Below, one piece after another: positions 7,051 to 64,000 of a stretch of DNA of 64,000 nt. The stretch comes from Macrostomum lignano. Its lineage: Eukaryota. The stretch covers positions 34,473 through 98,472 of the forward strand of contig NIVC01002736.1 of assembly GCA_002269645.1 (NCBI GenBank). The letters are read 5' to 3'. The notes beneath the pieces were generated by a model that saw nothing but the letters and a program-made list of their open reading frames with translations, ran no database searches and was not told the DNA's origin. Within the stretch, counting starts at the first letter, position 1, and each line of letters starts with the position of its first letter. The position numbers were made by a program, and so were the translations under genes.

Positions 7051-7974
7051 TAGACTGGTAGAAACTAAGACATCGAGACGCCGAGGCGTCAGGCCAGGAC
7101 AAACCCACAGTGCTTAATAGAGAAAAAGAGACCATAGAAAAAATGAAACACTGTTTGCCAGCCAACCAAATTCGATCTCGTGGCTATGAAGCGGCCGGGT
7201 TGGTGGACAGTGTACTGTGCAAATGTAGAGAGCGTGCCACTGCAAGTGAAGGGATAGGAAAAGCAGGGTTTTCCTTACATATGCATCTCTCCCCTCCCGT
7301 ACATCCATCCTTCCTGGATTCGCTCATATATATAGTTACCAGACACGGCCATGCATTTTGAAGCGACCTGTCTTCTGAATAAAATTATAAATGGCTAACT
7401 TCTATAGTGGTTGTTCCTATTAAAATAAACCACGATTAAGTTGTAATTTAAAATTAAGCTCCTTAATAGTGAGGCTTAAGATAATAACAAAGGACATGCA
7501 CAATAGTACATAAATTGTTAGTCTGTTAAATTTTATTTAATTTTTTTTATTTCTGGCCTCTACTAGTCTGAAGCAAGAATCAATAGCAATTTTATCGATA
7601 TGGAAAATAGAGCATTATTAATTTTAAGTCTTCTGTCAATTATTGGATGGAGAATTTCTCAATGTGTTGATCGTAAGTAAAAATTTCTTTTCTTGGTTTA
7701 TTTTTTGCCATGGTTGAGTAGAGAACACAGTGGTACCGTAGGTACTGTAGTGTTGAAATAGTAGAATGGCAACGTGTAGTATAGTAGATTAATAGTGTAA
7801 GTAATGTCGAATTTATATATCGTTTAGAGTTCGTTGAGTTAGAGTAGCTGGTTGGTAATTAGAGCGACAGAGTAGGTAAATAATAGATTAGGCAGAGTAG
7901 GTAATTAGAAGATTAGGGGGAATAGGTAATTAGTAGAGTAGACAGAGTAGGTAATTAATTAGAAGATTAGGCAG

Positions 7975-10900
7975 GGAATAGTAGGTAGCTAATTGGTAGG
8001 TTAGCTAGAGTATGGCAGAGTAGGTAGCTAATTGGTAGGTTAGCTAGAGTATGGCAGAGTAGGTAGCTAATTGGTAGGTTAGCTAGAGTATGGCAGAGTA
8101 GGTAGCTAATTGGTAGGTTAGCTAGAGTATGGCAGAGTAGGTAGCTAATTGGTAGGTTAGCTAGAGTATGGCAGAGTAGGTAGCTAATTGGTAGGTTAGC
8201 TAGAGTATGGCAGAGTAGGTAGCTAATTGGTAGGTTAGCTAGAGTATGGCAGAGTAGGTAGCTAATTGGTAGGTTAGCTAGAGTATGGCAGAGTAGGTAG
8301 CTAATTGGTAGGTTAGCTAGAGTATGGCAGAGTAGGTAGCTAATTGGTAGGTTAGCTAGAGTATGGCAGAGTAGGTAGCTAATTGGTAGGTTAGCTAGAG
8401 TATGGCAGAGTAGGTAGCTAATTGGTAGGTTAGCTAGAGTATGGCAGAGTAGGTAGCTAATTGGTAGGTTAGCTAGAGTATGGCAGAGTAGGTAGCTAAT
8501 TGGTAGGTTAGCTAGAGTATGGCAGAGTAGGTAGCTAATTGGTAGGTTAGCTAGAGTATGGCAGAGTAGGTAGCTAATTGGTAGGTTAGCTAGAGTATGG
8601 CAGAGTAGGTAGCTAATTGGTAGGTTAGCTAGAGTATGGCAGAGTAGGTAGCTAATTGGTAGGTTAGCTAGAGTATGGCAGAGTAGGTAGCTAATTGGTA
8701 GGTTAGCTAGAGTATGGCAGAGTAGGTAGCTAATTGGTAGGTTAGCTAGAGTATGGCAGAGTAGGTAGCTAATTGGTAGGTTAGCTAGAGTATGGCAGAG
8801 TAGGTAGCTAATTGGTAGGTTAGCTAGAGTATGGCAGAGTAGGTAGCTAATTGGTAGGTTAGCTAGAGTATGGCAGAGTAGGTAGCTAATTGGTAGGTTA
8901 GCTAGAGTATGGCAGAGTAGGTAGCTAATTGGTAGGTTAGCTAGAGTATGGCAGAGTAGGTAGCTAATTGGTAGGTTAGCTAGAGTATGGCAGAGTAGGT
9001 AGCTAATTGGTAGGTTAGCTAGAGTATGGCAGAGTAGGTAGCTAATTGGTAGGTTAGCTAGAGTATGGCAGAGTAGGTAGCTAATTGGTAGGTTAGCTAG
9101 AGTATGGCAGAGTAGGTAGCTAATTGGTAGGTTAGCTAGAGTATGGCAGAGTAGGTAGCTAATTGGTAGGTTAGCTAGAGTATGGCAGAGTAGGTAGCTA
9201 ATTGGTAGGTTAGCTAGAGTATGGCAGAGTAGGTAGCTAATTGGTAGGTTAGCTAGAGTATGGCAGAGTAGGTAGCTAATTGGTAGATTAGCTAGAGTAT
9301 GGCAGAGTAGGTAGCTAATTGGTAGGTTAGCTAGAGTATGGCAGAGTAGGTAGCTAATTGGTAGGTTAGCTAGAGTATGGCAGAGTAGGTAGCTAATTGG
9401 TAGGTTAGCTAGAGTATGGCAGAGTAGGTAGCTAATTGGTAGGTTAGCTAGAGTATGGCAGAGTAGGTAGCTAATTGGTAGGTTAGCTAGAGTATGGCAG
9501 AGTAGGTAGCTAATTGGTAGGTTAGCTAGAGTATGGCAGAGTAGGTAGCTAATTGGTAGGTTAGCTAGAGTATGGCAGAGTAGGTAGCTAATTGGTAGGT
9601 TAGCTAGAGTATGGCAGAGTAGGTAGCTAATTGGTAGGTTAGCTAGAGTATGGCAGAGTAGGTAGCTAATTGGTAGATTAGCTAGAGTATGGCAGAGTAG
9701 GTAGCTAATTGGTAGATTAGCTAGAGTATGGCAGAGTAGGTAGCTAATTGGTAGGTTAGATAGAGTATGGCAGAGTAGGTAGCTAATTGGTAGATTAGCT
9801 AGAGTATGGCAGAGTAGGTAGCTAATTGGTAGGTTAGATAGAGTATGGCAGAGTAGGTAGCTAATTGGTAGGTTAGCTAGAGTATGGCAGAGTAGGTAGC
9901 TAATTGGTAGGTTAGCTAGAGTATGGCAGAGTAGGTAGCTAATTGGTAGGTTAGCTAGAGTATGGCAGAGTAGGTAGCTAATTGGTAGATTAGCTAGAGT
10001 ATGGCAGAGTAGGTAGCTAATTGGTAGGTTAGCTAGAGTATGGCAGAGTAGGTAGCTAATTGGTAGGTTAGCTAGAGTATGGCAGAGTAGTTAGCTAATT
10101 GGTAGGTTAGCTATAGTATGGCAGGGTAGGTAGCTAATTGGTAGGTTAGCTAGAGTATGGCAGAGTAGGTAGCTAATTGGTAGGTTAGCTAGAGTATGGC
10201 AGAGTAGGTAGCTAATTGGTAGGTTAGCTAGAGTATGGCAGAGTAGGTAGCTAATTGGTAGGTTAGCTAGAGTATGGCAGAGTAGGTAGCTAATTGGTAG
10301 GTTAGCTAGAGTATGGCAGGGTAGGTAGCTAATTGGTAGGTTAGCTAGAGTATGGCAGAGTAGGTAGCTAATTGGTAGGTTAGCTAGAGTATGGCAGAGT
10401 AGGTAGCTAATTGGTAGGTTAGATAGAGTATGGCAGAGTAGGTAGCTAATTGGTAGGTTAGATAGAGTATGGCAGAGTAGGTAGCTAATTGGTAGGTTAG
10501 ATAGAGTATGGCAGAGTAGGTAGCTAATTGGTAGGTTAGATAGAGTATGGCAGAGTAGGTAGCTAATTGGTAGGTTAGATAGAGTATGGCAGAGTAGGTA
10601 GCTAATTGGTAGGTTAGCTAGAGTATGGCAGAGTAGGTAGCTAATTGGTAGGTTAGCTAGAGTATGGCAGAGTAGGTAGCTAATTGGTAGGTTAGCTAGA
10701 GTATGGCAGAGTAGGTAGCTAATTGGTAGGTTAGCTAGAGTATGGCAGAGTAGGTAGCTAATTGGTAGGTTAGCTAGAGTATGGCAGAGTAGGTAGCTAA
10801 TTGGTAGGTTAGCTAGAGTATGGCAGAGTAGGTAGCTAATTGGTAGATTAGCTAGAGTATGGCAGAGTAGGTAGCTAATTGGTAGGTTAGCTAGAGTATG

Positions 10901-11275
10901 GCAGAGTAGGTAGCTAATTGGTAGGTTAGCTAGAGTATGGCAGAGTAGGTAGCTAATTGGTAGGTTAGCTAGAGTATGGCAGAGTAGGTAGCTAATTGGT
11001 AGGTTAGCTAGAGTATGGCAGAGTAGGTAGCTAATTGGTAGGTTAGCTAGAGTATGGCAGAGTAGGTAGCTAATTGGTAGATTAGCTAGAGTATGGCAGA
11101 GTAGGTAGCTAATTGGTAGATTAGCTAGAGTATGGCAGAGTAGGTAGCTAATTGGTAGGTTAGCTAGAGTATGGCAGAGTAGAGTAGCTAATTGGTAGAT
11201 TAGCTAGAGTATGGCAGAGTAGGTAGCTAATTGGTAGATTAGCTAGAGTATGGCAGAGTAGGTAGCTAATGGGTA
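7975..11275. repeat. 39-bp minisatellite GGCAGAGTAGGTAGCTAATTGGTAGGTTAGCTAGAGTAT (~84 copies, very homogeneous)
   Basis: Read directly. Confidence 0.97.
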
Positions 11276-12149
11276 GAGTAGACAATGTTAATTATGGTAT
11301 AATATGTTGTCAGAGTAGACAGCTAGTGGTAGACTGTTAGAATAGGTAGTTAGGGTATACAGCGGTAGAGTAGGTGCAGGTTCACTGTGTTAGCAAAACA
11401 GGGGGAAATGGCTTGCAGTTACGTTACGGAGCTACAAGGCTAAGAGAGCCAGAAAGCGAGCATTTCCTAAGAACGTATTTTGCGCAATAAAAGCCAAAAG
11501 AACCTCTTCTGACTCGATTTCGGGCTCGAATTTTTTTTATTACGTTGGCCCTCGAATCGAATCCGTGGCTGAGACTGGGGAGTAGGGTAGAGGTCCTTGA
11601 TTCGGGACAAATGCTTTCTGGGGGGGGGGGCTGCTCTCTACCACCACCTCTCTTCTACCTTCTATAAGTCTATCTGCAGCTGGTCATATAACTCAACCTT
11701 CCTTTGTCGGCAACGTCATCATCAACTGTTTTTGCGCGCGCGTGGCAATATATTACACAGTATGGTATTATATATATATAAATTTTATTCGTTCCACTAT
11801 TGAGGACACGCCCGAATCCGTGCATAACCTTATACTGTAATTTATAATGTGTGGCATCTGGCCCGAGCACCAGACACTGGACACCGGGGCGGGGGGGGGC
11901 TGTCTCCAAAGCCAGCCAGTTAGTTGAGCCGTGAAAATTGATCCCGGCCGTTTTCAGTGTTTTTTTATAGGCAGACAGTTTTGCGACGTTGAGGCTTTTA
12001 TCCGGAAATAATTGCCGCCTGCCTCTCTAGAGGTGATAAATATTTTTAATCGTTTAATTACAGGCGAATTAAGAAACTATATATATTTAGGACGAGTGTC
12101 TCTTTATTCTCAACTTCTCTCTATACGCACCTACTCATGCTCTGTGCAT

Positions 12150-46825: not shown

Positions 46826-48367
46826 ATGGACTGCAATGACCTGCTAGGTGGTGATAGTAGAGACTTGGATCCACCAGCAGCTGATACTGCGCCAGATGGC
46901 GATGAGCGAACACCGCTGCTGATTACGCAATCGGCTACCTATCATCGTCATCAATATCAACATCTCCGTCATCATCATTTCCAGCATCATCAACAGGCAT
47001 CGAACGCGGCTGAGCAGCAGCAGCCGCAAACACCGCCTACCCCAGCACTCATGTCGTCATCTGACATGCAGTTCAGTTTGCAAATCCAGTGTCAACCTGG
47101 CGACGAACTGGCCAACAGTCTAGATTTTAGCAACAGCAGTACCCGGCATTGTCATAGCGGCGAAACTGAACGTCGATTTCGTTACATTGCCGCGCAGAAG
47201 CTTGCTCGCCGACGCCTGGTAATTGCAGCTGTAGCCTGTCTAGTCTTCATGATCGGAGAGGTGATTGGCGGCGCTATAGCCAATAGTTTGGCTATAATGA
47301 CTGACGCTGCTCATCTGTTAACGGATCTGACTAGTTTTCTCATCAGCTTATTAGCTCTGTTTCTGGCCACTAAGAGGCCTAGTAGAAGAATGAGTTTTGG
47401 TTGGTATCGAGCCGAAGTGATTGGAGCTCTGGTGTCCGTTCTGATGATTTGGATAGTCACAGCTGTGCTAGTCTATATGGCTGTGCATCGGGTTGTCCAA
47501 AAAGATTTCGAAGTCGAAGGTGAAGCCATGCTAATCACGGCAGGTGTTGGCGTAGCATTCAACATGTTGATGGCGTTGCTGTTACACCAGGGTCACGGAC
47601 ATTCGCACGGATTGCAGCGTCAGAATTGTCAGGCTGACGGTCCCCCAGCTGTCGCCGCGGATTCGTCTTCCCAGTCCACGGTTGATAAAGACGATGAAGA
47701 AGAGCCGCCGGAACCAGTCGATGTGGATGCGGCCGACACTGCTGGCATTGTTGAACGGGATTGTCAACGGAGACGCAGGCGTCCTGAGCATCATGCTGGC
47801 GATCATGAGCATCAGGAGCACGGCGAGCACGATCGTCATCACGAGCACATTGGCAGCAGTTTCGGTCACAATCACGCTCACAACAATATGAACGTTCGCG
47901 CCGCCTTCATACACGTTATTGGCGACTTATTGCAAAGCATTGGTGTATTAGTAGCGGCTCTTATCATTTACTATCGACCGGATTATAAACTGGCCGATCC
48001 GATATGCACGTTCGTATTCTCGCTGCTAGTTTTGGGAACTACAGTGAGCATACTGAAGGACACTGTCCGAGTGCTGCTGGAGGCCACTCCCCAGGGCATC
48101 GATGTGGCTAAGTTCCGGGCCGCTCTGGCTGCGCTACCCTGCGTGATTCAAGTGCACAGCCTTCGAGTTTGGAGTCTGACTCTTGGCCGCAATGTGGCCA
48201 GCGCTCATCTAGTTGTTAACTCCAATTGCGGCGTAGTGCAACGCGACAATCTTGTTGTCAAGGCAACGGAGCTATCTAAGAAGATTTTTCAAATGTCGGA
48301 CGTGACTCTTCAAGTTGAGCCGCATGTCTTAGAGATGGACAGTTGCGAGCATTGCAGATCTGTTTGA
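46826..48367 (+). CDS. SLC30A2: Cation diffusion facilitator zinc transporter, ZnT2/3/8 clade (intronless, 513 aa)
   Basis: SLAIMTDAAHLLTD (TM2 HxxxD), RRMSFGWYRAEVIGAL, His-rich loop, NMNVRAAFIHVIGDLLQSIGV (TM5 HxxxD), ADPICTFVFS, VHSLRVWSLT C-terminal domain. Confidence 0.93.
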   Translation: MDCNDLLGGDSRDLDPPAADTAPDGDERTPLLITQSATYHRHQYQHLRHHHFQHHQQASNAAEQQQPQTPPTPALMSSSDMQFSLQIQCQPGDELANSLDFSNSSTRHCHSGETERRFRYIAAQKLARRRLVIAAVACLVFMIGEVIGGAIANSLAIMTDAAHLLTDLTSFLISLLALFLATKRPSRRMSFGWYRAEVIGALVSVLMIWIVTAVLVYMAVHRVVQKDFEVEGEAMLITAGVGVAFNMLMALLLHQGHGHSHGLQRQNCQADGPPAVAADSSSQSTVDKDDEEEPPEPVDVDAADTAGIVERDCQRRRRRPEHHAGDHEHQEHGEHDRHHEHIGSSFGHNHAHNNMNVRAAFIHVIGDLLQSIGVLVAALIIYYRPDYKLADPICTFVFSLLVLGTTVSILKDTVRVLLEATPQGIDVAKFRAALAALPCVIQVHSLRVWSLTLGRNVASAHLVVNSNCGVVQRDNLVVKATELSKKIFQMSDVTLQVEPHVLEMDSCEHCRSV

Positions 48368-50331
48368 ATGAATGTTTTCATTTTTTGGCTCATCGATTCC
48401 TGTCAGTTGTTATAATCGAACTTAGTTATTATTACCACGTAGATAAGCAGTTAGAAGACTTAAATTAAAAGTACAGAGTCTTGGAGCAAAACTGAAAGTA
48501 TCAAACAGTTGTGATCGAATGCGATGGCGCATTAAAACCATGAGTTGAATTGTTTTTCCTCGCACTAAAACTTTGATTGTGGATCTTTTATCCTGTACTG
48601 ACACCTGGATTCGGATAACTATTGAAAACGAGCATATATGTGCATTATCTTTCTATTGATTATCGTTATTTTCTTTCGACAGCGTCAAGATTTTTGTATA
48701 GATTCTTAATTTTGCTGTAATTGTTTTGCATAATGAAATCTAATGCAAAATTGACAACGATTATAGCTTTGAATGAACTCATCATTTGTTCTGCGTATAT
48801 TACTTTGTAACTAAGTCTATTATAATATGATATATAACCAAGATGAAGTAACATATGCTTCCCAAATCCATTTCTGAAAATTCGATACATTCGATTCAGA
48901 TAGCGGTTCTTTTTCTTTTCTTGGGTTTGCGTTTTTTGATTTTGTATTTTTATCCCTTCTCTTAATTTTTTGTTTTTATTAGTGCCAGTACAGTATTGAT
49001 ATATATTAACTATAAAGTGTGAGCTTGAGCTGCTAAAATGTGTTCAATTCGTTGTCTTGATCGTTTTTTCTCCGACTATATGCGATGAGAGCGATTATCA
49101 AAATTATTTAAACTGTTTTGGGCCGTTTGTCTCATGTTTAAAAAAAACAATATCAAAATGATTACGCTGCTGAGTAATCTGTCATCTCATTCGATTATAA
49201 TTATTTTTCTTATCGAACGTACTTAATTGGGGCTGGATTTTGTTATACATATAGTTCGTGTTTATTTGAACGTACTTCAATTTATTTACAGAACGAATCC
49301 CTATTTTGTTAATGTCAATCTCAGTAGAAAAGCAATTGTCCGACAAAATTAATTTGATTTCTAGCAGCGCAACCGAGAGGAACTGTTCAATTAGTACGTG
49401 TGGCTCTCATGCGGCTATCATGTCAAATATAAATGGAGACGCGCAAATGTGCTACATGTTATTTTTTGCGCAAATTGTTCGTTTGATTTATTTATTTGTC
49501 AACTTAAGAAAATAGTTTTTTAGATCAAGAACCTCGTCCCTTTCCAATCAAGGCGTAGATTTAGGAGTCTGTCATTAAGGTATTTTGCTAACCTAAACCA
49601 TAATTCCTTAAAGCTGAAATTGTCAAATTCCTACGAGCGTAGCAATTCTTAGAATCTTGTGAAAGCAATTTCTGTTCCTGTTGAGCTCTTCTTCCTTGCG
49701 AGCATAGAATCTTGTCTCCCTTTGTCTTCCGTTTTACTTTTCTTGAGCAAAAGCAAAGCCAACTTCCCAATAACACAGGAAATTAAATTCTGTGTAATAT
49801 ATTCCACTCCTTATTGCTTGGCACGAATTAAAATCCAGAATGTTACCTTACAATCCCTGTTTTCTAAGGTCGATACTAGGCAGGTAGTTGCGAACTTTTT
49901 TTGTGAAAGTTGTCTCTAGAAGTAACGGGGTGAAAAATAGTCAGTCTTTATTAATCTCTTCTATAGCCTCGGGAATTTTGCTTTAATAATTCTTCGATTC
50001 TACTCTAAGATCGACTAGTTGCATGAATTAATTAATAAGACCCTCATTTTCTGAGATTCTTCTATTGTTTTTGAATATCTTGTTTTACGCAGTCAAGAGC
50101 ATGATGTGCACTTCAGATTTCGCATTAAGCAGCTTTTAACTTACTTTGTACTTAGACATTTTTATTAATAGTAATGACGCGGAAGATGCCGCAGTCTTAG
50201 CTGTCTATGTCTTTTCGAAACGTCGACTAAACAAACAATAGTATTAATCAAGCAAAACAAAAAGAATGGTTGCTCTGTTTGTAAATGACTTTGCACTTTT
50301 GTGTATCAGAGTTATGTTTATAAAAGAAGAT

Positions 50332-52334
50332 ATGTTTCTACTGCTGCTGAGCATTCTTAATCTTGTTATTCCTGCTGGCTGGGCTACTGTACCGTTGGAG
50401 CCGTATCCCGCTATCCAGTTTACTGTCGAGGACTCGATTACCATCAAAGATTACAGTAAAGCGCGCATCACGCTACTATCAGTTGGACAAGAGCGAACCT
50501 TAGTCTGCGAATCGCCGATTAGTGTATCTGCAAATAAGCGAAAAAACCTACAAATCGATTGGTACTTTGGCGATACAGATTCTCTGACTAAAATTATATT
50601 CGATAGCAACGGCTGGTCTCTGTCGCATCGTACTACTACGAATAACAGTAGTAGTAGCGCGTTTCGCATATTATTAGACGATGGTGTCTACCGCAACAGA
50701 GGTTCTATTGTTGTTAAGTCGAGCAATATCAGCAGCTTTAGCGATAAAAATGGCTTCAGGTGGGACATTTTAAAACCCGTCTGTGTCTTTCGCTTAAAGT
50801 TTAGGAAGTCAGGACGCTACAATTGCAAAACTTGCCGATCTTGAGAATACTTTTTTCGAACTTTAAGTGGAACTTTTGAATAAAGGATTGTGGATAAAGG
50901 CTCCACTCTGAAACCAGTGGTCGACTTTTCTCTGAGTTCAGAGCCCCAAGAGTAATTCCCAGGTCAGTGCAATTATGGCTAGAGTTGGATTAAAGGTTAC
51001 TTTTTGACCATTGCTTTGGGGTGTTTCTGAGTGAACAGTTTGCAGTAAAAACCATTCCGAGTTAGTATAATTTGCGAATGTAGCGTCTTTCAGACTCTCT
51101 ACTCAAGCCTTTGCTAGCGATATCTCAATTGTCGTCCAACGCGAACTCCACTTGCAGTTACAATCATCTCTTAAATGGAATTCTGGCTTGCGTCTATAGT
51201 CGCAGCGGTGATATCTCATCGATATTTCACTTGATGACTTTGTTGCCACCGTTGCCAATCAATCGTGAGTCTGCAGCGGTGACGCAGTGTCCACCAGGTC
51301 ACGCTGCGGCTAGTTACGCTGGTCTGTCAGTTTGTCAACCCTGTTTGCCTAATGAATTTTCGCCTGGCGGCGTGTCGCCTTGTCAGCCGTGTCGAGCTGG
51401 TCAGTTTAACAGTCGGTTTGCTAGTCCTGAATGCGCTAAACAACGGTTTAAACGATCGACAACAGCAGGGAAGGCGACTGTGTTAGTCATCATTTCGTCT
51501 GGGATTTATTTGGTTGGATTTGAAAATAAATAGTAGCAATGATAATGCAGAAGTTGTAAAGTGTTCTCCATTATACGCTCGTATAGAAGCCTAATTTTCA
51601 TTTCTAAGCCAAGTCACTAAACCAAATATTTTAGCACCATTACTTCAACAATCTAGACCAGGCCGCAGGGATCGGCAAACTCCGGCCCACGAAGCCTCTC
51701 TATCACGGATCTCGGGTCCTTTGAAACTTCACAATAGCAATCCAGTTCGCTCAAGGCTTGTGTCTCTTCTCATCTCTTCTATTTCGTCTCTCCTCTTCTC
51801 CTCTATTCCCTCGCCTCTCTTTTCTTTCTCTCTTCCCCTGCTCTGGTCCGCAGTCATGCGCTTGATTGTCTATCTGGCCCCTAAGATAAAAAAGTTTGCC
51901 TATCCCTGATTTTTACTATGCTTACCAGCTTTCAACTTTTACCAGCTAGATATGCTAATTGATCGAAATTTTTATGCTTGAAAATTTACAAGAGTAGGAG
52001 AACACTTTACAATGCACATGTGGCAAGGCTACCAAACAAGCAACCATAATTCAAAACGTGATCAACCACTGTAACAAATTCTTTCTCAAGGCATCTGATG
52101 CACCGGCGTCTTCCGCTAGCCGATTTTAGAAGCGTAATAATGTACCACTGTCTGCTAATATTGCTTCTGTCGGCGGTTGTCGTGGCTCTATTATTAGTCA
52201 GCGCACTAAGCTTTGAAACTGTTTGGCACGGCGTTCTATCCGGTATTGAAATGAGCATAGCTGGAGCTCTCGATGATAGATTTGTGCTAAAAGAACCCGA
52301 AGCCGATGGGAATAATGATACTCAGGAAGCTTGA
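50332..52334 (+). CDS. Uncharacterised type-I membrane protein: signal peptide, Ig-like domain, Cys-rich ephrin-receptor-like (GCC2/GCC3-type) module, TM, short acidic tail; exons ~50332-50759, (unresolved middle), 51094-51445, 52091-52334
   Basis: MFLLLLSILNLVIPAGWA signal; LVC..IDWY..SGRYNC Ig motifs; QCPPGH..CQPCLPNEFSPGGVSPCQPCRAGQF..C; the phase-2 join caacg|gtttaa to ctcaag|g gives KQR-HLMHRR then a TM. Splicing between 50760 and 51093 is not resolved. Confidence 0.6.
51666..51908 (-). mobile_element. hAT-type MITE (243 bp) in an intron
   Basis: 16-bp TIR CAGGGATCGGCAAACT / AGTTTGCCTATCCCTG (one mismatch); related copy at ~6000-6372; no clean 8-bp TSD. Confidence 0.75.
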
Positions 52335-52552
52335 AATCTGACTTCGTATAATTGATTTCGCATGTACTCAGTAGTACTCTTTACTATACAGAAGAGATAA
52401 AACAGATCAATAAATACACGTACTTTACTCGTCTATAGTGATTGAAAATAAATCAGTTCTTACTAGTATTCCACTTTTCCACTTATTTTTCAACTGAAAC
52501 TTTCGTTTTACTAATGAATTCTTGCAATAAAACTTTACTGCTGGCCAATTCT

Positions 52553-52554
52553 AG
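52553..52554 (+). promoter_or_regulatory. Unpaired splice acceptor upstream of ISCA1 (candidate SL trans-splice site)
   Basis: TACTAAT branch-like motif at ~52509 and caattctag| 19 nt before the ATG; AATAAA motifs of the upstream gene at ~52409 and ~52447. Confidence 0.45.
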
Positions 52555-52573
52555 CTAAAAACACAATACGTCA

Positions 52574-53065
52574 ATGCTGCCACATCGGGTTGCATCATCA
52601 TCACTGAGGCTTGTCGGCCTGTGCAGAGCCCTATCAGCCAATTCGCTATTTCATCAGCAGCAAACTATCCGATGCTTGGCTTCTGGCCTATCGGCCACAG
52701 TAATACCCGGTCGTGGGCCGAATTTCCGACCAACCCGATCGCCGCTAACCCTCACCCAAGCGGCTGTTGATCGAGTCAAAGCTGCACTGGCCGAATCCAA
52801 CGGTTCAGCTAAAGCGTTGAGAATTGGCGTCAGAACAAGAGGATGCAATGGACTGTCGTATACGCTGGACTATGCCAGCGAGAAAGCGGCCATGGACGAG
52901 ACGGTTGAACAGGACGGGGTGACGGTCTACATCGATCGGAAGGCTCAGCTCACACTGCTAGGCACAGAGATGGACTACGTGAAGGGTCCGCTAGTTAGCG
53001 AGTTTGTCTTCTATAATCCCAACGCTAAAGGTACCTGCGGTTGCGGCGAAAGTTTCAATGTCTGA
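52574..53065 (+). CDS. ISCA1: Iron-sulfur cluster assembly 1 homolog, mitochondrial (intronless)
   Basis: N-terminal R/S/L-rich presequence; LRIGVRTRGCNGLSY, LTLLGTEMDY, EFVFYNPNAKGTCGCGESFNV. Confidence 0.96.
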   Translation: MLPHRVASSSLRLVGLCRALSANSLFHQQQTIRCLASGLSATVIPGRGPNFRPTRSPLTLTQAAVDRVKAALAESNGSAKALRIGVRTRGCNGLSYTLDYASEKAAMDETVEQDGVTVYIDRKAQLTLLGTEMDYVKGPLVSEFVFYNPNAKGTCGCGESFNV

Positions 53066-53888
53066 TTTTGTCTACCCGTAGTTAGTTACTCATCCTTGGT
53101 TGCTTGCACTGCTTGCTCGTCTGTCAAATCACGGATACTAAAAACATTAATAGTCAAATGAAATCTGGGGTTCCTATTGGTTGAGAAGTGTTTTGTCTAT
53201 GACCGACAAAACCGCATTCTATACGCCCAAGAGATACAGTCGTAGTGGGCGTAATAAAACAGAACAATTTATTTATTTGGCCCCAATAATTAAAATTTGT
53301 TTCCGAATGATATTACGAGTACATTTAATACCTGACACTTACACTAACTTTATTGACTAAATATCCAGGAGTCCAGAAGGTAAAGAGTGCAACATCTTGC
53401 TACTTACTAGAAGTAGCAATCCACGAATTTTCTTTGCTTTCATTTTCATCAAAAAATAAAGGATTAAAATGTTTATCATTTCTATGTTAATTGAATGAAG
53501 AGATTTCTATGAATTTTTGCTTACTAATAATTTTCGCTTGTGTACATATCTGGGGAAGTATTTTTGTTTCGTTTTATCGTGTATAGATTAAAACGTCTGA
53601 ATATACGGTAGATCCCTCTTGGTGTCAGTTAATGACTTCAGAATGGGATCTGATCAGATAAGAATATGATGGCCTTGTGAATTGACCTTCTCTGAAAAAA
53701 TGATAAATATAAGTTTCATTTAGAATAGCTCCGTTTGCATTAGTGATTTCATTTTATAAAATAACCGAATGTCTTTTTCTGTGTTTTTTCTTTATTCCAA
53801 TAGATTTAGCCAGTGCAATTTACAGAAACGTTCATTTATAGTCAGGGTCAAGCTGTCGGTCTAGCCAAATGTACATTGATACTTAAAA

Positions 53889-54040
53889 CTCTACCCTTCC
53901 CTCGCCTGATCCTCGTCTGGGCATGAAGGCCTATCGAAATGTACGTTGATATTTGAATCTCTACCCCTCTCTCGTCTGATCCTCGTCTGTGGGCATGAAG
54001 GCCTATCGAAATGTACGTTGATATTTGAATCTCTACCCCT
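53889..54040. repeat. Tandem duplication of a 70-72 bp unit (2 copies plus a partial)
   Basis: CTCTACCC...CTGATCCTCGTCT..GGGCATGAAGGCCTATCGAAATGTACGTTGATATTTGAAT occurs twice. Confidence 0.9.
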
Positions 54041-54564
54041 CCGCCCGAGTCTTATCTGCCTCATAGTGCAAATGTAACAGGTCGAATTTTAATCCAAAAC
54101 TGCCGTACAAAACTGTCTCCTCCTATTTCCTAGCAACTGCACATGCTGATAGTCAACATTCATAAGTTTTGTTTCCTGCATTTCTTTTTTTCGATTGGCG
54201 CTTCCGTTAATGAGCAACAGCATTAAGAACTTGTTACAACTTGTTAAAAATCGATCGAAATAAGAAATAAGCCTCTTGTCTGTGGCAGTCACCCATTCTT
54301 ACAATAGCGATTTCAGCCCGTCCTTTGTATGACCTTTATCTATGCTGATAGATAAAGTAAAATAGACTGCCAACTTTACGAGTAGTAATACACTTGCTAC
54401 TTGTAGGTAAAGAAACCAAACAGTATTTTTTTGCAACAGCGCTACTCATAGTTCATATCCGATTTTATTCGTTCTCTAACAAACGATAATTAGTTGATCG
54501 AATTACACCAGATTTACTTCTCAAAAATATTGGTTTATTCCATCCTCTGTAACTCTCAGTCTTC

Positions 54565-55214
54565 TTAACGCGAGCCAATTCTGTTAGTCGTCCCAGTTTC
54601 GATTTCATCTTGCATTGCCGTCTCATCAAACTCATACGGTGCAACTTGCAACTCAAAAGACAGCGGCCATATTGGATCCTGTGGGATTGGCTATGTGGTT
54701 GTTATCGTTGTCTTCGTCTTAATAGGTAAAGACTATTAATAGAGACATCACTTACCAGGCGTTTGTAAGCCTTGAGTCTGGCTAATAGCAGGTGTTGCAG
54801 GTCTACCTGGTTCCCAATTGTCATCGGCTCATCTAGCGAGCCCTGGGAGTCATGGACAGCGCTCTTCAGAGCTCGTTTAACATTCCCTGCGAAGTATTTC
54901 GACCGCGAGTTAAATGACTAAAAAACAGCTAGAGCATCACATTACCATGTACAAGTATGGAAGTACTCACACGAGTAGCAGTAGTGCAAATTGATGTGGT
55001 CGGAACAAACTGAAACGTAAATTACAAATCGTCTAGTGAGAAAATTTTCTGCTCAGTCAAACTTGATACAAAGCTTTTTTAAAAAAAACGCATGGTCTAT
55101 TTTCTTGAACAAAGACCTACCAGCATGAGAGTCTCCGAACTCGATCAGACAAGCAGCACAGAGAGCTACAATCAGCAGCTTCCAGGATCGATTTGTTCCA
55201 GCTAGCGACATCAT
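54565..55214 (-). CDS. Putative neuropeptide precursor (~125 aa); exons 55214-55121, 55009-54971, 54886-54756, 54678-54565
   Basis: Canonical GT-AG introns with matching phases give MMSLAGTNRSWKLLIVALCAACLIEFGDS-HAVCSDHINLHYCYSWNV-KR-ALKSAVHDSQGSLDEPMTIGNQVDLQHLLLARLKAY-KR-LDPIWPLSFELQVAPYEFDETAMQDEIETGTTNRIGSR*. Signal peptide, two KR sites, AATAAA ~26 nt after the stop. The last acceptor is less certain. Confidence 0.7.
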
Positions 55215-55744
55215 GGTTATGATGATTGATTAGCTTTCTAAGAAAAGATTACCAAAATGGACGATCCAACACTCGATTTGCTTCAAATACAGCTGTGTAT
55301 TTCAGCCGTATATATCATGCACAAAGCTGAATTTTATCGAATATAAAAATCCTTAACTGTGATTCGTTGGGCATTCTGAATGGTCCTGCAGTCCAGTCTA
55401 TGCAGACGGAATCTATATCGGCAGCTATACTACTAATAGTATCATAATACATTTATAGTCACTGGATAAACGGACCTCTGAATAATTTATGCACGACAAC
55501 CCACGGGTTCATTTCCAAGTGTGACGTCATCACGCTTTTACTTACACGATGTACATTGAACACAGATTGATGGTGCTTAATAAACGTTACTCATCAGGTA
55601 AAAACGTTACTATAGATTTACATGTATACTAGCCTCCCCCTTCGGGGCGGCCAAAAAATACGTGTAGGCAAGGAACGAAGGTTGTTTATGTGGATCCCAT
55701 TTGCCTTTATCCTATTTAGCAATTTCCCTTGTAATATTTGGCAA

Positions 55745-55905
55745 ATGAGTGCCTGCAGCGCTAAAATGAGTTCCTGCGGCGCCAAAATGATTACATCAGG
55801 CGTCAAAATGGATGTCTACCTGTAACGCAAAAATGAGTACCTGCGGCGAAAAAAGGAGTGCCTATGGTACCAAAATGAATGTCTTCCTGCGGCTCGGCGC
55901 TAAAA
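55745..55905. repeat. Degenerate ~21-bp tandem (AAAATGAGTNCCTGCGGCGC)
   Basis: About 7 diverged copies read directly. Confidence 0.7.
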
Positions 55906-57109
55906 ATTATAGATTTATAACTGTAATCGTTAAAAAGATCTATGACCCCAATATATCAGCACAGGTATACTAATATAGCATTTTTATTGAAGATTTTATT
56001 TAAGAATTCGAGCACTCATTCAGGGCATTGCCAATCGCATTTAAAGTTTCTACTTTCGTCTATGGTTAAACACCGTCTATGGCACAGGCACGGACTGAGC
56101 ATGAATTAAGACACAGACATGCAGCAGATGCTAATAAAGTTGTATAGTCCACGGGACGAAATCAATCTACAGGGTTGGCGTTCCATGGTACTGCAGAGAC
56201 CCTGGAGTGGATCACTCTGTCCTTGCCTCGCTGTTTGGCCCGTGAAAACATGATTGAGCACATGGGTTCTGAAGGTTTAGTCACAGTTGCAGACTTTCTG
56301 CATGCGTCACAAACTACACGATCTTGTCTAATGGCTCTGAGTTTAATGTCTGGCGGCTTCAACTGTTGGATGTCTGAAATTCAATGCTCTTCTCAATACA
56401 CGGTTTTGGTCATAGACAATCGTGGAAGCGCGGGTTGAATACCGCTTGGCCGTATCTTGAATCGAATGCACGACTTCTTAAATTAGCTGAAAATGCTAAT
56501 TTTTCTCCCATAGCCAATTTTCTACAATATTTTGCAATCGAATTTTTATTTCTTTCCTTGAAGAAGCTGTCACAGATTTTTCGCTCAGCTAACCAAGTAG
56601 AGTATTTAATCAGCTGCCCACAACAGCTGAACGGCTGCGTGACAAAGCGTGAATTGAGAAATTGAAGAGAATTCGTCAATTCACAATGACAGCTTCTCAT
56701 AAAATTAGAATTCTATCGTTTGGCACGATTGATAAGCAATAAAGAGCAATGCATTAATAAAGCTCTAATGGTGTAAAATCGACGACAAGAAAGTTGGAAT
56801 TACATAGTATTTACCATTTTATAAATCTACCAAATTTATTCAATAATTATGATCATTGATTTATAAAAGTTTTAGATGTGCGGTATAATTAACTGTAAAC
56901 TATGAGAACGACATCGAGGTACGAATCGAACGCATAGCATAATAAATATAACTGATTATTATAGTACTCAAAATTGCATATCGTATTTACACCGAGTGCA
57001 GAGTAGTCCAGAGTCAAATTAAGCATCAAAGTTTTACAACAGTAATATTATCCACACAGTCACGTGCAAATAATAAAATAGTTCTCCAAATTTTTTTACA
57101 TATAAGAAG

Positions 57110-57430
57110 CGCTCCTTATCACCCATTGGCTAAAGCCCCCACCCCACCCCTAGAGAATCCTAGAATATACAGCTAGACTAAGATAAGAGAAACTCATCGC
57201 TCATTGGCTAGAGACCCCACCCCACCCCAGAGAATACGAAAATGTACAGCTAGACTAAGATAAGAGAAACTCCTTTTCGCTCATTGGCTAGAGACCCCAC
57301 CCTACCCCACCCTAGTTCTAGAAAATCCCAGAATGTACAGCTAGACTAAGATAAGAGAAGCCCCTTATCGCTCATTGGCTGGAGCCCCCACCCCACCCCA
57401 GTTCCAGGGAATCCGAGAATGTACGCAGCT
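57110..57430. repeat. Four ~80-90 bp tandem units carrying CCAAT, CCCCACCC and AGATAAGA motifs
   Basis: CATTGGCT at 57124, 57202, 57282, 57373. Confidence 0.85.
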
Positions 57431-57595
57431 AAAAGCAACTACTCGATGTTGGTTGGCTAAACCCAGTCACTCTTATCGAAGTTGGTGATACACAAAAAAT
57501 GTTAACAATTGTTGAGTTTGTGTTTCTTGTTTAAAGAAGTGCCTTTCAAAATATCAATTTTTAAGACATTTTAAGACAGCTGAATTCATTTATAA

Positions 57596-59942
57596 TCAGC
57601 CCTCCATTAGCGACTGCTCGCACACCTGACGCTCGAGCGAGAATCGATAAGCGTACTCTGCTTCAATTTGTTCTGGCGACTTGATAACAATTTCATTTAA
57701 ATTAAAACCGCCAATCGTGGCCGCTTCGGAGCTGGCGTTCCCGCCCCAGCGTCGGCTGAGCTCGAATGGTATGCCGGACAATGGGTCGCGAATTTTGCTC
57801 GGCTGCCGACTCGGCGGAGGTCGCTGCGGCTGTACATTGATCTGTTGGACTCCGGCTCCTCGCTGCTGCTGCGACTGCGACTTCTGCTGCTCCACCGGGC
57901 CGTTCTTGACGCACAGAGTGAAACTGTTGAACTCGCTGTTTGCGGGTGGCAATTGGATGAACTAGTTACCGAGTGCCTGCTGTCTATCTCATATCTCATC
58001 TCACCCCTATCCTGCTCTCAATCTCACCCTATCCTACTCTCGATCTCACCCTATCCTATTCTCAAACTCACCCTATCCTTACTCTCAATCTCACCCTATC
58101 CTTACTCTCAATCTCACCCTATCCTTCTCTCAATCTCACCCTATCCTTACTCTCAATCTCACCCTATCCTTCTCTCAATCTCACCCTATCCTTACTCTCA
58201 ATCTCACCCTATCCTTCTCTCAATCTCACCCTATCCTTACTCTCAAACTCACCCTATCTTTCTCTCAATCTCACTCTATCCTATTCTCAAACTCACCCTA
58301 TCCTTACTCTCAAACTCACCCTATCCTATTCTCAAACTCACCCTATCCTTACTCTCAATCTCACCCTATTCTATTCTCAAAGTCACCCTATCCTTACTCT
58401 CAATCTCACTCTGTCCTATTCTCAAACTCACCCTTTCCTTACTCTCAATCTCACCCTATCCTATTCTCAATCTCACCCTATCCTTACTCTCAATCTCACC
58501 CTATCCTATTCTCAAACTCACCCTATCCTTACTCTCAATCTCACCCTATCCTTCTCTCAATCTCACCCTATCCTTCTCTCAATCTCACCCTATCCTATTT
58601 TCAAACTCACCCTATCCTTACTCTCAATCTCACCCTATCCTTACTCTCAATCTGACCCTATCCTTGCTCTCAATCTCACCCTATCCTTACTCTCAATCTC
58701 ACCCTATCCTACTCTCAATCTCACCCTATCTTTACTCTCAATCTCACCCTATCCTATTCTCAAAATCACCCTATCCTTACTCTCAATCTCACCCTATCCT
58801 TCTCTCAAACTCACCCTATCCTTACTCTCAATCTCACCCTATCCTATTCTCAAACTCACCCTATCCTTACTCTCAATCTCACCCTATCCTTCTCTCAATC
58901 TCACCCTATCCTTCTCTCAATCTCACCCTATCCTATTTCAAACTCACCCTATCCTTACTCTCAATCTCACCCTATCCTTCTCTCAATCTCACCCTATCCT
59001 TCTCTCGATCTCACCCTATCCTTCTCTCAATCTCACCCTATCCTTCTCTCGATCTCACCCTATCCTACTCTCAATCTCACCCGATGACAGCGTATCCGGC
59101 GGGAGGGCGCTTCTGCTTCCCCAGCAGAATGATGTCATTAATAGCCGAAGTGGCCTCGGATTTGCGCTGCATCTTCACAGCCAGTTGCTTCTTTTTCAAC
59201 GCCTTCTCCTCTGCAATAAAGAAACGAATATAAAACACTTGATTTACTACTTAATAAAGCAGTAGAAAATACTGCAAAAATTACAAATACGCATAAAATG
59301 GGAAAAGCACACAAAATAGTTTATAGCTTATAAAAATTTAGAGTTTATAAAGTTTCGAGTTTATGAAGTTTCAGGTTCGTGAAGTTTCGAGTTTATGAAG
59401 TTTCGTGTTCATGAAGTTTCGAGTTTTTTAAGTTTCGAGTTCATAAAGTTTCGTGTTCATGAAATTTCGAGTTTTTGAAGTCTCAAGTTCATGAAGTTTC
59501 GAGTTCATGAAGTTTCGAGTTCATGAAGTTTCGTGTTAATGAAGTTTCGTGTTTTTGAAGTTTCGAGTTTATAAAGTTTTGAGTTCATGAAGTAACTCAC
59601 GAGTATCGCAGGTGGTCTCAATGATAGTGAACTGATCCGGCACATCCATCGGGCCATTGCAGACGGCTAAATCGCAGAGCACCTGGTCGGAGTCCTGATA
59701 ACTAACACACAGGTAGCGCGTCACTCGCCGACTCAAGAAACCGTCTTTCCACAGGTCGGCATCTTCGCGACTGTCGTGAGTCTGCGTAATCTGTAAGAGA
59801 AATTTAATTAATTAATTTACTCTTTTACAATTGGGAAGTTAAATAGTTGTAAGCTTGACCGCATTATACTACTTACAGGCGAGTATTTCGGTGGCGCTTT
59901 GTTCGGATCCGTGACAATTTTCAGGTCCGTTATGTTGGCCAT
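57596..59942 (-). CDS. MVB12: Multivesicular body subunit 12 (ESCRT-I; MABP + UMA domains); exons 59942(59967)-59877, 59790-59601, 59210-59081, 57935-57596, plus a 17-nt 5' exon 61206-61190
   Basis: Spliced 241 aa: MANITDLKIVTDPNKAPPKYSP-ITQTHDSREDADLWKDGFLSRRVTRYLC...QEKALKKKQLAVK..INDIILLGKQKRPPAGYAVIGEFNS...LSGIPFEL...EYAYRFSLERQV. DLWKDG..VTRYLC and the C-terminal UMA motif match MVB12/FAM125. Confidence 0.9.
57990..59080. repeat. Intronic 21-23 bp minisatellite TCTCAATCTCACCCTATCCTTAC containing the MVB12 5' splice-site motif in each unit
   Basis: Read directly; the - strand unit is GGATAGG-GTGAGATTGAGAGTAA. Confidence 0.95.
59335..59592. repeat. Intronic 16-bp minisatellite AAGTTTCGAGTTCATG
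   Basis: Read directly. Confidence 0.9.
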
Positions 59943-60139
59943 CGGATTGAGTAGATATTTTTTGTAGCTGTCAATCACTCAGACAAAAGGAAAGATATCT
60001 AGTTTGACCAATTTTGATAGCTAGCTGTATTGGAGACCTAAACCGTGGGGGTGAATCATGCAGTAAAATTCAATATTTTTAATAATCACGTTTTTTCTCA
60101 AGCTAGCTATTCCCAATATCAACATTACCCTTTAACTGG

Positions 60140-60980
60140 CCTGTCCAATCTGACTACTAGTCCATCTAATCTGACTACTAGTCCATCTAATCTGACTACT
60201 AGTCCATCTAATCTGACTACTAGTCCATCTAATCTGACTACTAGTCTATCTAATCTGACTACTAGTCTATCCAATTTGATTACTAGTCCATCCAATCTGA
60301 TTACTAGTCTATTCAATCTGATTACTAGTCTATCCAATCTGATTACTAGTCTATCCAATCTGATTACTAGTCTATCCAATCTGATTACTAGTCTATCCAA
60401 TCTGATTACTAGTCTATCCAATCTGATTACTAGTCTATCCAATCTGATTACTAGTCTATCCAATCTGACTACTAGTCTATCCAATCTGACTACTAGTCTA
60501 TCCAAGCTGATTACTAGTCCATCCAATCTGATTACTAGTCTATCCAATCTGATTACTAGTCTATCCAATCTGATTACTAGTCTATCCAATCAGATTACTA
60601 GTCTATCCAATCAGATTACTAGTCCATCCAATCTGATTACTAGTCCATCCAATCTGATTACTAGTCTATCCAATCTGATTACTAGTCTATCCAATCTGAT
60701 TACTAGTCTATTCAATCTGATTACTAGTCTATTCAATCTGACTACTAGTCTATCCAATCTGACTACTAGTCTATCCAATCTGATTACTAGTCTATCCAAT
60801 CTGATTACTGGTCCATCCAATCTGATTACTAGTCTATCCAATCTGATTACTAGTCTATCCAATCTGATTACTGGTCCATCCAATCTGATTACTAGTCTAT
60901 CCAATCTGACTACTAGTCTATCCAAGCTGATTACTAGTCCATCCAATCTGATTACTAGTCTATCCAATCTGATTACTACC
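60140..60980. repeat. 21-bp minisatellite CTAGTCTATCCAATCTGATTA in MVB12 intron 1
   Basis: Read directly; 7-aa period SLSNLIT. Confidence 0.95.
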
Positions 60981-61206
60981 ATTTGCGATCTGCAAAAAAT
61001 TAAAGAACAACACAAGCAACTGGATGCCAAATATTTCCAATCAGAAATTGAGTAAAAAAACGAGACAAAAATGCTACTTACGCACGCGTGATAACGCTTA
61101 CTTCTGAATTACATCAACATTACCCTTACCAACTAACTGCAAATTAGTATTCCTTAGTATTTGTTTTCTTCTATTATTAAAAAACGTACCCAATGTCCTC
61201 TGTCTT

Positions 61207-61245
61207 CTGAAGAACAAAATAGATTAACAATCAGTCAATCAACAT
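61207..61245 (-). promoter_or_regulatory. Strong unpaired splice acceptor between NudC and MVB12 (candidate SL trans-splice site)
   Basis: - strand: gattgactgattgttaatctattttgttcttcag|aagacagaggacattgg|gtacgt, ~240 bp after the stop of intronless NudC. Confidence 0.55.
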
Positions 61246-61447
61246 ACGGAATTAGCGAATGGGAAACGTTATTTTAACGATAAGAGGAACGCGTTTAGAT
61301 ATATTACTGTCAGTAGTTTTATAGCGAATCGATTGATTTTGCCGAGTCTAGAACAGATATTAATTATTAACCGAATTTTAGTCTATTAAAGTTGACAGCA
61401 GGCGTTTGTTTGTTTAAAGACACGTCAGCTTCAGACGCCAGAGGCTT

Positions 61448-62461
61448 TCAATTGAACTTGCAATTAGAAAAGTCCATCTCCGGATGTTGCTTCATAAATT
61501 TCTGCAATATTTCATTCTTCTTTTGATCTTCGCTAGTTGGCAAGCCGAGCTCCTTCTGCCTCTGGTCGTACATCATCTTCTCAACAATTGATCTAGTCTC
61601 GCCGTCCAGATCGCTCAGCTTAGAATTCTCCGGTTCAACTTTTTTAGTGTTAATAACCGGATCAGTGGTGACAACTTGACCCCACCATTCCATCTGGTTG
61701 ACCTTCTCTAGGCAGATAATCAGAGTCTTGCCCTCGTCCAGAGTCCAAGTGGACTCGTCCGGTTTAATATGATGAGCCAATTGGCCGTGCAGAATCGGCG
61801 GCTGATTGCGCAATCCGGCGGTTATGTCAGACTTGGTAATGCTCACAGTCAGATCCCGGCCCTTCACCTTCACTGGCAGTGGGACTCGAATCTCAAGATC
61901 CCTCAGCGTCTGTGTCCAACTGTAATTCTCATAGTCGCCTCCATTGCCAGCATTCGGCTTCATCTTGCCCTTGTCCTCAGCGGATTCTTCCTCTTCAGCG
62001 GCATCGCCGTCGCCTTCTTTTTTCTTTGTAGTAGTAGCAGTAGCCGCCTCGCCATTGTCCGACTCTTTCGCCGTTGTTGATGAAGACGCCGGGGCATCAT
62101 TCGATTTTTTGTTCTTTTCGGCGTCTAATTCTTTCTGAAGCTGTTCCGCTTCGGCGTCAGTTAGTTCTTGGACTCGCGGGTCGCCGGCGGCGGCTTTTGC
62201 GGCGGCCTGTTTCTCGCGTTTTTTAGCTTCAGCCTCGGCTTTCTCTTTGGCTCGCTTCTCTTCAGCCTGGCGTTTGTGCAGTCGGAATGCTTTGAGCACG
62301 AGCTGTTCGCAGTCTTTGCTGCCCTGACCAACATAGAAATCTGTGCGCCTAGCCAAGAAGCCAAAGAATGTGTCCAGGATTTCAACTACGCCGCCCTCTT
62401 TGCACTGCTCGGCAATTGTCATGTAGACATTGTCGCAGTAGGATTGCTTCTGCTCATCCAT
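61448..62461 (-). CDS. NUDC: Nuclear migration protein NudC (intronless; ATG at 62461, 337 aa)
   Basis: [13 protein letters not shown]-terminal domain; [23 protein letters not shown] domain; [10 protein letters not shown]; [31 protein letters not shown]; [11 protein letters not shown]. Confidence 0.96.
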
Positions 62462-64000
62462 TGTGTTGTATACTGCTTTATTTGCTTGCTTCAAGATTTT
62501 ACTGCAATTTTGTTATGAAGAATGAAGTTGAAATAGATACTTGCAATATACTTAATAAGACATTTCAGCTAGTTCACTATCCATTGATTTCTTTGTTAAG
62601 CAAATCACCCTTGGTAATTAGTAGGTCAAGTTATAAGACTTCAGCTTTACTTAGGTTTGGGTATTTTTATTTGTGCAAAAAACTATCCTTAATTATTAAA
62701 TTGAATGGCACACAGATTTTTTGACTATTTTTGTACTGCTATACATTATACACAGCATTTTGAAAGAAAATACCAATAACTACCATGACATGTTTTGCAA
62801 AAAAAAACAAATTTTTAGGATTGATTTGCATGATTTATAGTATAATTGTTTACTATAAAACAATGGACTATAGTTTTAGCCAAAAAAGCAAATTATAGAT
62901 GATAGTATACTACATTTATATTTATTAGATGATTCTTAACTATCATAAGTATTTGTTAAATATATTTATTAATATTAATATTAAAACAAATTTACATTTA
63001 ATGAAACAAGCTTGATTTATATTTCCTCCATAACATTATTCTTCTACTAAACTTTTTTTTAAAGTTAGATTATTGTATTATTGATTTATATGCATTTAAT
63101 TGACCCATAAGCCAATTTATACCCTTTGTGGACACATGCTTACCACTACTATTGTCTTTATTGCATTTATTTTATATTGTCTATTTTCCTTTGCATTAAT
63201 GATTGTAATGATAAATTATGAAAGTTATAAAAGCTATCAAGTACAGGATGTGCATGAAATTAACTAATTTGAGAAAAAAATAACTAAAACCTAGGCTTAT
63301 AGACAACAAACACCTTTAAAATTGGGTACATAAAATTAATCCTTATAAAGAATCTTTTTAACCTTAAATTCCTATCTCTATATTTTAGCAATTGATTTTT
63401 AATTTCTATATCGATGAAATCCAGTTTTTAGGAGCTGAGAATTATAGCTTATAGAAAATTATACATAAGAATTATATTAAAAACTTAAATACATCTCCAT
63501 ATCTCTAGTTAAGATTAGATATATACTACATTAATGCGTCCAAAAAGTTCTTAGATGCCCCTCCTATCTCTGCATCTGTTCAATCGATTTTTAAAAAAAG
63601 GACACAAACATGGACCTATATATAATCAATTCAGTATTAAAGTTTCAGCTTAATTGGGTTGACAGAGCAAAAGCAATTGATCATTTACAAAGGAACCTAC
63701 AAAATTAGCAATAGGATTTTAAACTTAGCAAAATTTGAAAGTTAACAAGCAAACAGTTCAAACTGACAAGTCCAAAACTTCAAAAATAGATCACCAATTG
63801 TGAAAATCTTCAGAAGAATATTCATTCCATCAAATGTGCTTGTCATATTGCATTGGCAACTCCTGATCCTCAATTCATGCCAATCCCTAGGTGTCACTCT
63901 GATCAGCCTCTCAGTAGCCACTTGCAGCTTGGGGAAGCTGGCAAACTGCTGGGGGATACACCAAGGTGAATTTTCTATGGGAGGGGGATACACCAAGGTG

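Follow-up and report, generated by a model that had tools for sequence, protein, structure and literature searches.

NudC and MVB12 in Macrostomum lignano: A Probable Spliced-Leader-Resolved Operon and the Start Codon of Its Second Gene

Spliced-leader operons and spliced-leader start codons

Operons resolved by spliced-leader (SL) trans-splicing have been described in the flatworm Macrostomum lignano (PMC5730564, PMC8629364), in which about 15% of genes (about 10,000 genes) lie in operons, 75% of the operons hold two genes, and the SL, CGGTCTCTTACTGCGAAGACTCAATTTATTGCATG, is 35 nt long and ends in ...TTGCATG (PMC8629364). The subject here is a pair of genes, NudC and MVB12, all of whose features lie on the minus strand of a 64,000-nucleotide stretch (the window) of the M. 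lignano contig NIVC01002736.1 (GCA_002269645.1), whose accession series is that of Mlig_3_7, the annotated assembly published by Wudarski et al. 2017 (PMC5730564). The pair comes from the same species and assembly as the described operons and shares with them the two same-strand genes, the short spacer, a [T/C]TNCAG acceptor following NudC, and the placing of both genes under a common transcriptional-unit prefix. Operons of two genes form the largest class, the spacing is often enlarged by repeats, and no structural difference sets the NudC–MVB12 pair apart. On balance, NudC and MVB12 are probably the first and second genes of one transcriptional unit, an ordinary SL-resolved operon in which MVB12 is translated from its own ATG. 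An earlier note on this stretch had proposed a dicistronic unit in which the SL itself donates the start codon of MVB12.

The flatworm SLs reported so far all end in AUG. According to Cheng et al. 2006, as cited in PMC9851317, the SL AUG is in frame in 28% of S. mansoni transcripts that undergo trans-splicing, which is close to chance, with more than 40 cDNAs requiring it. Of 187 clusters bearing the SL in Echinococcus granulosus, 143 are full-length with the SL ATG; according to the authors, nearby downstream AUGs often leave its use uncertain. The MVB12 locus resembles the flatworm cases of SL-AUG initiation (Cheng et al. 2006, as relayed in PMC9851317 and PMC3510090) in that the SL ends in AUG and, under one splice choice, would be in frame. 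It differs from the well-supported cases, as these are relayed there, in that they need the SL AUG, having either an open reading frame (ORF) without a start of its own or a truncated N-terminus, whereas MVB12 has its own orthologue-aligned ATG; the in-frame reading here moreover rests on a predicted weak donor. With a GTAAG donor, the locus would instead resemble the slORFs (PMC9851317), in that the SL AUG would open a 10-codon frame ahead of the MVB12 start.

The two genes and their genomic copies

The NudC protein carries the Nudc_N (PF14050), NuDC (PF16273) and CS (PF04969) domains, all above the curated cut-offs, and is about 50% identical over its full length to metazoan NudC; an exact look-up of the 337-aa sequence in a collection of 15 billion proteins found it absent. 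For MVB12, a five-exon model assembled from the window yields a 241-aa protein which is 100% identical to GenBank PAA55564.1, 32–37% identical to MVB12B-like proteins, and matched by the MVB12 domain PF10240 (E = 5.8e-55, 187 bits) from residue 4 onward. Its three verified donors (GTAAG, GTGAG, GTGAG) are all of the GT[G/A]AG type, which accounts for 65% of M. lignano donors (PMC8629364). No transcript-derived MVB12 protein was found in the protein collection, only three GenBank/UniProt models, all starting MANITD. Contigs from Logan RNA data holding MVB12 homologues (L004–L006) were set aside, as they are not flatworm-like and lack the SL.

The pair and its spacer are present in three genomic copies (L001, L002 and L003), of which L002 is the window copy, being base-for-base the reverse complement of window positions 47596–64000. 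The non-repeat parts of the three copies are about 99% identical to one another, and conservation of the 17-nt exon discussed below and of its splice sites among them is for this reason uninformative.

The three large introns of MVB12 consist mostly of tandem arrays (a 21-mer × 40, a 16-mer × 16 at 59337–59593 in intron 3 and a 22-mer × 49 at 57994–59082 in intron 4), the copy numbers of which vary among the three genomic copies.

Evidence for a shared transcriptional unit

That NudC and MVB12 form a polycistronic unit can be stated with good confidence. The identities of the genes, the way they are arranged, their common transcriptional-unit names and the sequence of the SL are established. 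In GenBank, the NudC copies are BOX15_Mlig027477g1 and Mlig032840g1, both marked partial, and the MVB12 copies are Mlig027477g3, Mlig032840g2 and Mlig032840g6; the prefixes Mlig027477 and Mlig032840 each include one NudC gene together with MVB12 gene(s), and on NIVC01001498.1 the pair carries the numbers g1 and g2 under a single prefix, with consecutive accessions. Such a shared prefix marks genes that were separated out of a single transcriptional unit (PMC5730564 Supplementary Fig. 5), the cutting having been performed by the TBONE pipeline from peaks of SL reads and poly(A) reads. Since both genes share transcriptional-unit prefixes, the operon is already implied by the public annotation; the literature searched does not single out the NudC–MVB12 pair, and neither the supplements of PMC5816591 and PMC5730564 nor a full-text search yielded a mention of Mlig027477 or Mlig032840.

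The geometry agrees with the operon definition of PMC8629364, which was applied here. Both NudC (62461..61448) and MVB12 (59942..57596) are encoded by the minus strand, no gene of the opposite strand intervenes, and the 1505 nt from the NudC stop to the MVB12 ATG shrink to about 670 nt when the 835-bp array is subtracted, which is below the 1-kb limit for repeat-adjusted distance. The CTTCAG before position 61206 fits the [T/C]TNCAG acceptor motif. Two hexamers resembling a polyadenylation signal, TATAAA (61323) and AATATA (61305), lie about 95–110 nt before this acceptor, near the published modal operon spacing of about 100 bp. The only ORFs between the two genes are in-phase artefacts of the 21-bp repeat, the period of which keeps frames open and gives rise to artefactual ORFs of up to 336 aa (60045–61055, plus strand). 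As no gene is annotated in the approximately 7.4 kb of the L002 copy upstream of NudC, NudC would be the first gene of the unit.

In the model proposed here, a promoter upstream of NudC would drive the whole unit, and the NudC mRNA would be cleaved and polyadenylated inside the 241-nt spacer. The SL (35 nt) would most likely be added to the MVB12 mRNA at 61206, the first strong acceptor, so that a short non-coding first exon would be joined to the first coding exon with removal of an intron of about 1.1–1.2 kb containing the 21-bp array, and translation of MVB12 would begin at its own ATG, 59942.

Several points weigh against this model. The spacer contains neither AATAAA nor ATTAAA, the canonical AATAAA thus being absent from it. 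The argument from shared prefixes leans on naming conventions and on the cd-hit clustering of transcriptional units, and the assignment of the MVB12 names to contigs is ambiguous. The units could also have been merged artefactually over the repeat, as the published mapping allowed up to 1000 multi-mapping locations. Finally, the argument drawn below from complete versus partial coding sequences (CDSs) presumes that TransDecoder behaved uniformly across genes.

The candidate acceptor at 61206

In the present data set, a strong acceptor was defined as YTNCAG ([T/C]TNCAG) preceded by 20 nt of which at least 14 are pyrimidines, and a donor-like site as a match of at least 6/9 to MAG/GTRAGT. The earlier note had placed a strong acceptor with no upstream donor about 240 bp past the stop of the intronless NudC, and this was borne out: the NudC stop codon ends at 61448, the acceptor, with 15/20 pyrimidines, follows after 241 nt, and no donor-like site lies between the stop and 61206. 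The sequence across this region reads ...tattttgttcttcag/AAGACAGAGGACATTGG/gtacgt, the GT foreseen after 17 nt being found directly past 61190.

Since about three [T/C]TNCAG hexamers are expected by chance in 1.5 kb, the motif match alone is weak. The surroundings of the acceptor are more telling. Strong acceptors occur in the window at 0.32 per kb per strand (n = 41), and only 6 of the 41 have a donor within 8–60 nt, so that about 0.07 acceptor–donor pairs would be expected in the 1.5 kb between the genes. The acceptor is followed by seven donor-like sites at 61205..61065, which is the sole 125-nt stretch on this strand with at least seven such sites that cannot be placed in a tandem array; the other minus-strand clusters of this density, where placeable, coincide with tandem arrays. 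The rarity of the acceptor–donor pair and the unusual donor cluster outside arrays make it plausible that a real first exon and intron begin at 61206, and this position can, with a modest lean in its favor, be taken as the trans-splice acceptor for MVB12. A second strong acceptor is found inside the proposed intron 1, at 60989.

The start codon of MVB12

Whether the SL AUG would extend MVB12 or precede it as an upstream ORF depends on the donor chosen in the first exon; what we infer from the features described here is where trans-splicing occurs, which donor is chosen and which codon starts translation. As the earlier note had stated, the M. lignano SL ends in ATG, and the frame from the first exon base runs through 59967 into the MVB12 ATG without a stop: the 61190/59967 join reads KTEDIGYKKYLLNP-MANITD. 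If any of the GTAAG donors at 61130, 61102 or 61082 is used instead, the SL AUG gives the 10-codon upstream ORF MKTEDIGYVF followed by a stop. An SL-donated start thus hinges wholly on the 61190 donor, and a 15-residue extension requires what is the weakest-looking donor available. Use of the SL AUG as the main initiator of MVB12, via a 17-nt micro-exon and with a predicted 15-residue N-terminal extension, is on these grounds unlikely; a start donated by the SL is possible but is the less likely reading.

The most durable of the alternatives is nevertheless the exact model of the earlier note, in which the SL is joined to 61206, 61190 is joined to 59967, and a 256-aa MVB12 beginning MKTEDIGYKKYLLNP-MANITD is the main product. 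It draws support from the open frame, from the position of the 61189 GT as the first GT past the acceptor, from the match of its donor to the consensus at six positions (−1, +1, +2, +3, +5 and +6), and from the AUG end of an SL of the kind that initiates in vivo in other flatworm species; furthermore, the out-of-frame alternative, with the SL spliced straight to 59967, would produce an overlapping upstream ORF of 60 codons. The GTACG donor, however, is unlike the GT[G/A]AG type seen in all three verified MVB12 donors, and three GTAAG donors follow it at 60–125 nt. Among 23 plausible 5′ structures enumerated from six acceptors and nearby donors, a continuous in-frame SL-AUG ORF results in only two, 61206/61190/59967 being one of them. 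The open frame itself carries no weight, because 40–49% of random 14-codon stretches from the non-array parts of the window are free of stops, which, combined with a 1-in-3 frame match, corresponds to a chance of about 0.15.

The annotation likewise argues against this model. Under it, the MVB12 transcript, once trimmed of the SL, would have an open frame starting at its first base, and a 5′-partial CDS of 255 aa would be expected, just as NudC was kept 5′-partial by the pipeline because its frame is open to the transcript 5′ end. The annotated MVB12 CDS is instead complete, with 241 aa from ATG 59942, in all three genomic copies, which implies that the transcript behind the annotation carries an upstream in-frame stop, an argument that presumes a uniform pipeline and falls short of proof. 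Such a stop would be supplied by use of the 61130 or 61082 donor, by an acceptor at 60037, or by an unspliced leader, which holds an in-frame TGA at 59981–59979. Moreover, the extension has no counterpart in orthologues, which begin M(x)3-10-P-ITGL with 3–10 residues ahead of the conserved P-ITG; the internal ATG 59942 gives the matching MAN-ITDL, and as this ATG agrees with the orthologue N-termini and the Pfam match runs from residue 4, MVB12 has no need of the SL AUG. An exact look-up of the 256-aa protein starting MKTEDIG in the same 15-billion-protein collection found it absent. Taken together, the exact model is improbable: all the sequence statements of the earlier note stood, its operon is supported by orientation, spacing, acceptor motif and shared prefixes, its SL-donated start is not supported, and the 17-nt exon with its 61190/59967 junction keeps the standing of a prediction.

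Slightly less probable is a model in which MVB12 is trans-spliced near its first coding exon, at 59967, 59977 (an alternative GAG acceptor from which that exon would start) or 60037, with the 61206 exon left unused and the operon retaining a long, repeat-filled spacer. Such a spacer, of about 1.5 kb minus the 835-bp array, would still lie below the 1-kb operon threshold. Joining the SL to 59977 gives AUG-UGA, and with the SL at 60037 there would be an upstream ORF of 13 codons and a stop in frame, which fits the "complete" CDS. All three acceptors, however, fall outside [T/C]TNCAG and have fewer pyrimidines, GAG and TAG being weak acceptors, the spacing is far from the mode of about 100 bp, and the acceptor and donor cluster at 61206–61065 is left unexplained.

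Least probable is a monocistronic MVB12 with its own promoter in the stretch of approximately 180 bp that separates the tandem array from exon 2, for which the A/T-rich TATTAAAAATAT about 100 nt upstream of 59967, the TGA 59981 of an unspliced leader (consistent with the "complete" CDS) and a reading of the shared unit name as a product of read-through or of repeats multi-mapped under the permissive published settings may be adduced, but which is disfavored by the presence of both NudC and MVB12 genes in both unit-name clusters, by the acceptor-like CAG before 59967, by the coincidence it would make of the splice-signal cluster just downstream of NudC, and by the 70% of trans-spliced M. lignano genes that have a human homologue, the conserved class to which MVB12 belongs.

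Implications

As an SL-resolved operon with MVB12 translated from its own ATG, the locus would add one further operon and leave the understanding of the system unchanged, with little import beyond annotation. If the exact model of the earlier note were true, the locus would be another, ambiguous member of the known SL-AUG class, one that keeps its own ATG, an in-frame SL AUG being a frequent and previously reported trait of flatworms; were the SL AUG the main initiator, SL-donated starts on downstream operon genes would be extended beyond the parasitic Neodermata to a free-living basal flatworm. More generally, gene models in species with SL trans-splicing call for caution: which of several clustered donors in a very short first exon is used can decide between an N-terminal extension and an upstream ORF, and only SL-read and junction data can resolve that choice.

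Feature coordinates

Table 1. Features of the NudC–MVB12 locus, in window positions
Feature	Position	Strand	Remarks
NudC coding sequence	61448..62461	minus	ATG 62461 to stop 61448; 337 aa; intronless
NudC 3′ UTR and intercistronic spacer	61207..61447	minus	241 nt; between NudC stop and acceptor
Candidate SL trans-splice acceptor	61207..61229	minus	CTTCAG; 15/20 pyrimidines; fits the published [T/C]TNCAG motif
Candidate 17-nt exon of the earlier note, AAGACAGAGGACATTGG	61190..61206	minus	predicted; ends at GTACGT, 6/9, not of GT[G/A]AG type
Cluster of 7 donor-like sites	61065..61205	minus	about 1 expected in 140 nt
Alternative exon-1 ends	61130 (GTAAGG), 61102 (GTAAGC), 61082 (GTAAGT)	minus	GTAAG donors within 125 nt of 61190
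Proposed intron 1	59968..61189	minus	1222 nt; mostly the 21-bp × 40 tandem array at 60144-60978
First coding exon of MVB12	59877..59967	minus	ATG 59942-59940; 5′ boundary 59967 predicted, after ...gattgacag
Remaining MVB12 exons	59790-59601, 59210-59081, 57935-57596	minus	with introns 2-4 span 57596..59790

The NudC 5′ end and related transcripts

The GenBank CDS of the window copy of NudC is 5′-partial and starts at 62488, directly after an AG, 9–10 codons upstream of the well-placed ATG, and an SL joined at this AG would be in frame with NudC. The site just upstream of NudC (62488–62507) reads AAAATTGCAG/TAAAATC in the window copy and forms a [T/C]TNCAG acceptor, joining of the SL to which would place the SL AUG before TAA, resulting in a one-codon ORF. 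The equivalent site in the L001 (approximately 7330–7350) and L003 (approximately 6960–6980) copies is AAAATGCATG/TAAAATC and lacks the AG. Because the annotated NudC CDSs of these other two copies start one codon earlier and without an AG, the NudC 5′ end looks defined by the assembly and not by the SL. The intronless state of NudC contrasts with the genome average of about 5 introns per gene, and the gene appears to be more G+C-rich than its flanks; no poly(A) or SL remnant that would mark a retrogene is seen at 61448–62461.

Three transcript-like Logan contigs (L007–L009, from SRR28338163, SRR28338165 and SRR28338166) encode a NudC that shares 80% identity with that of M. lignano and probably derive from another Macrostomum species. 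Their 5′ UTR, at least 55 nt long, lacks the SL; an AATAAA lies about 300 nt past the stop and a strong acceptor-like site, tctctctctctctgcgccttttcatacag, about 95 nt past it. As they run 360 nt beyond the NudC stop and reach no downstream gene, they carry no information on synteny.

Neighboring genes and repeats

A search of positions 57000–64000 against Rfam gave no match, and a scan of the window detected neither an SL RNA gene nor a remnant resembling the SL. A third gene on the same strand (54565–55214, minus) encodes a 125-aa product whose N-terminus resembles a signal peptide; its distance of 2.4 kb from MVB12, on the downstream side, exceeds the 1-kb limit, and it was not counted in the operon. 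The next gene after it, on the opposite strand, is an Fe-S biogenesis gene. Directly past the 3′ end of MVB12, at 57100–57420, four imperfect repeats of about 60–70 bp with GGGGTGGGGTGGGG...AGCCAATGAGCGA...CTTATCTTAGTCTAGCTGTACATTC are present, which Tandem Repeats Finder did not report. More than half of positions 1–38000 of the window is made up of minisatellite arrays with units of 4–40 bp, among them a 39-mer array 3.3 kb long with 99% identity (7980–11276), and it is these arrays that cause the extreme GC-skew swings in the composition profile.

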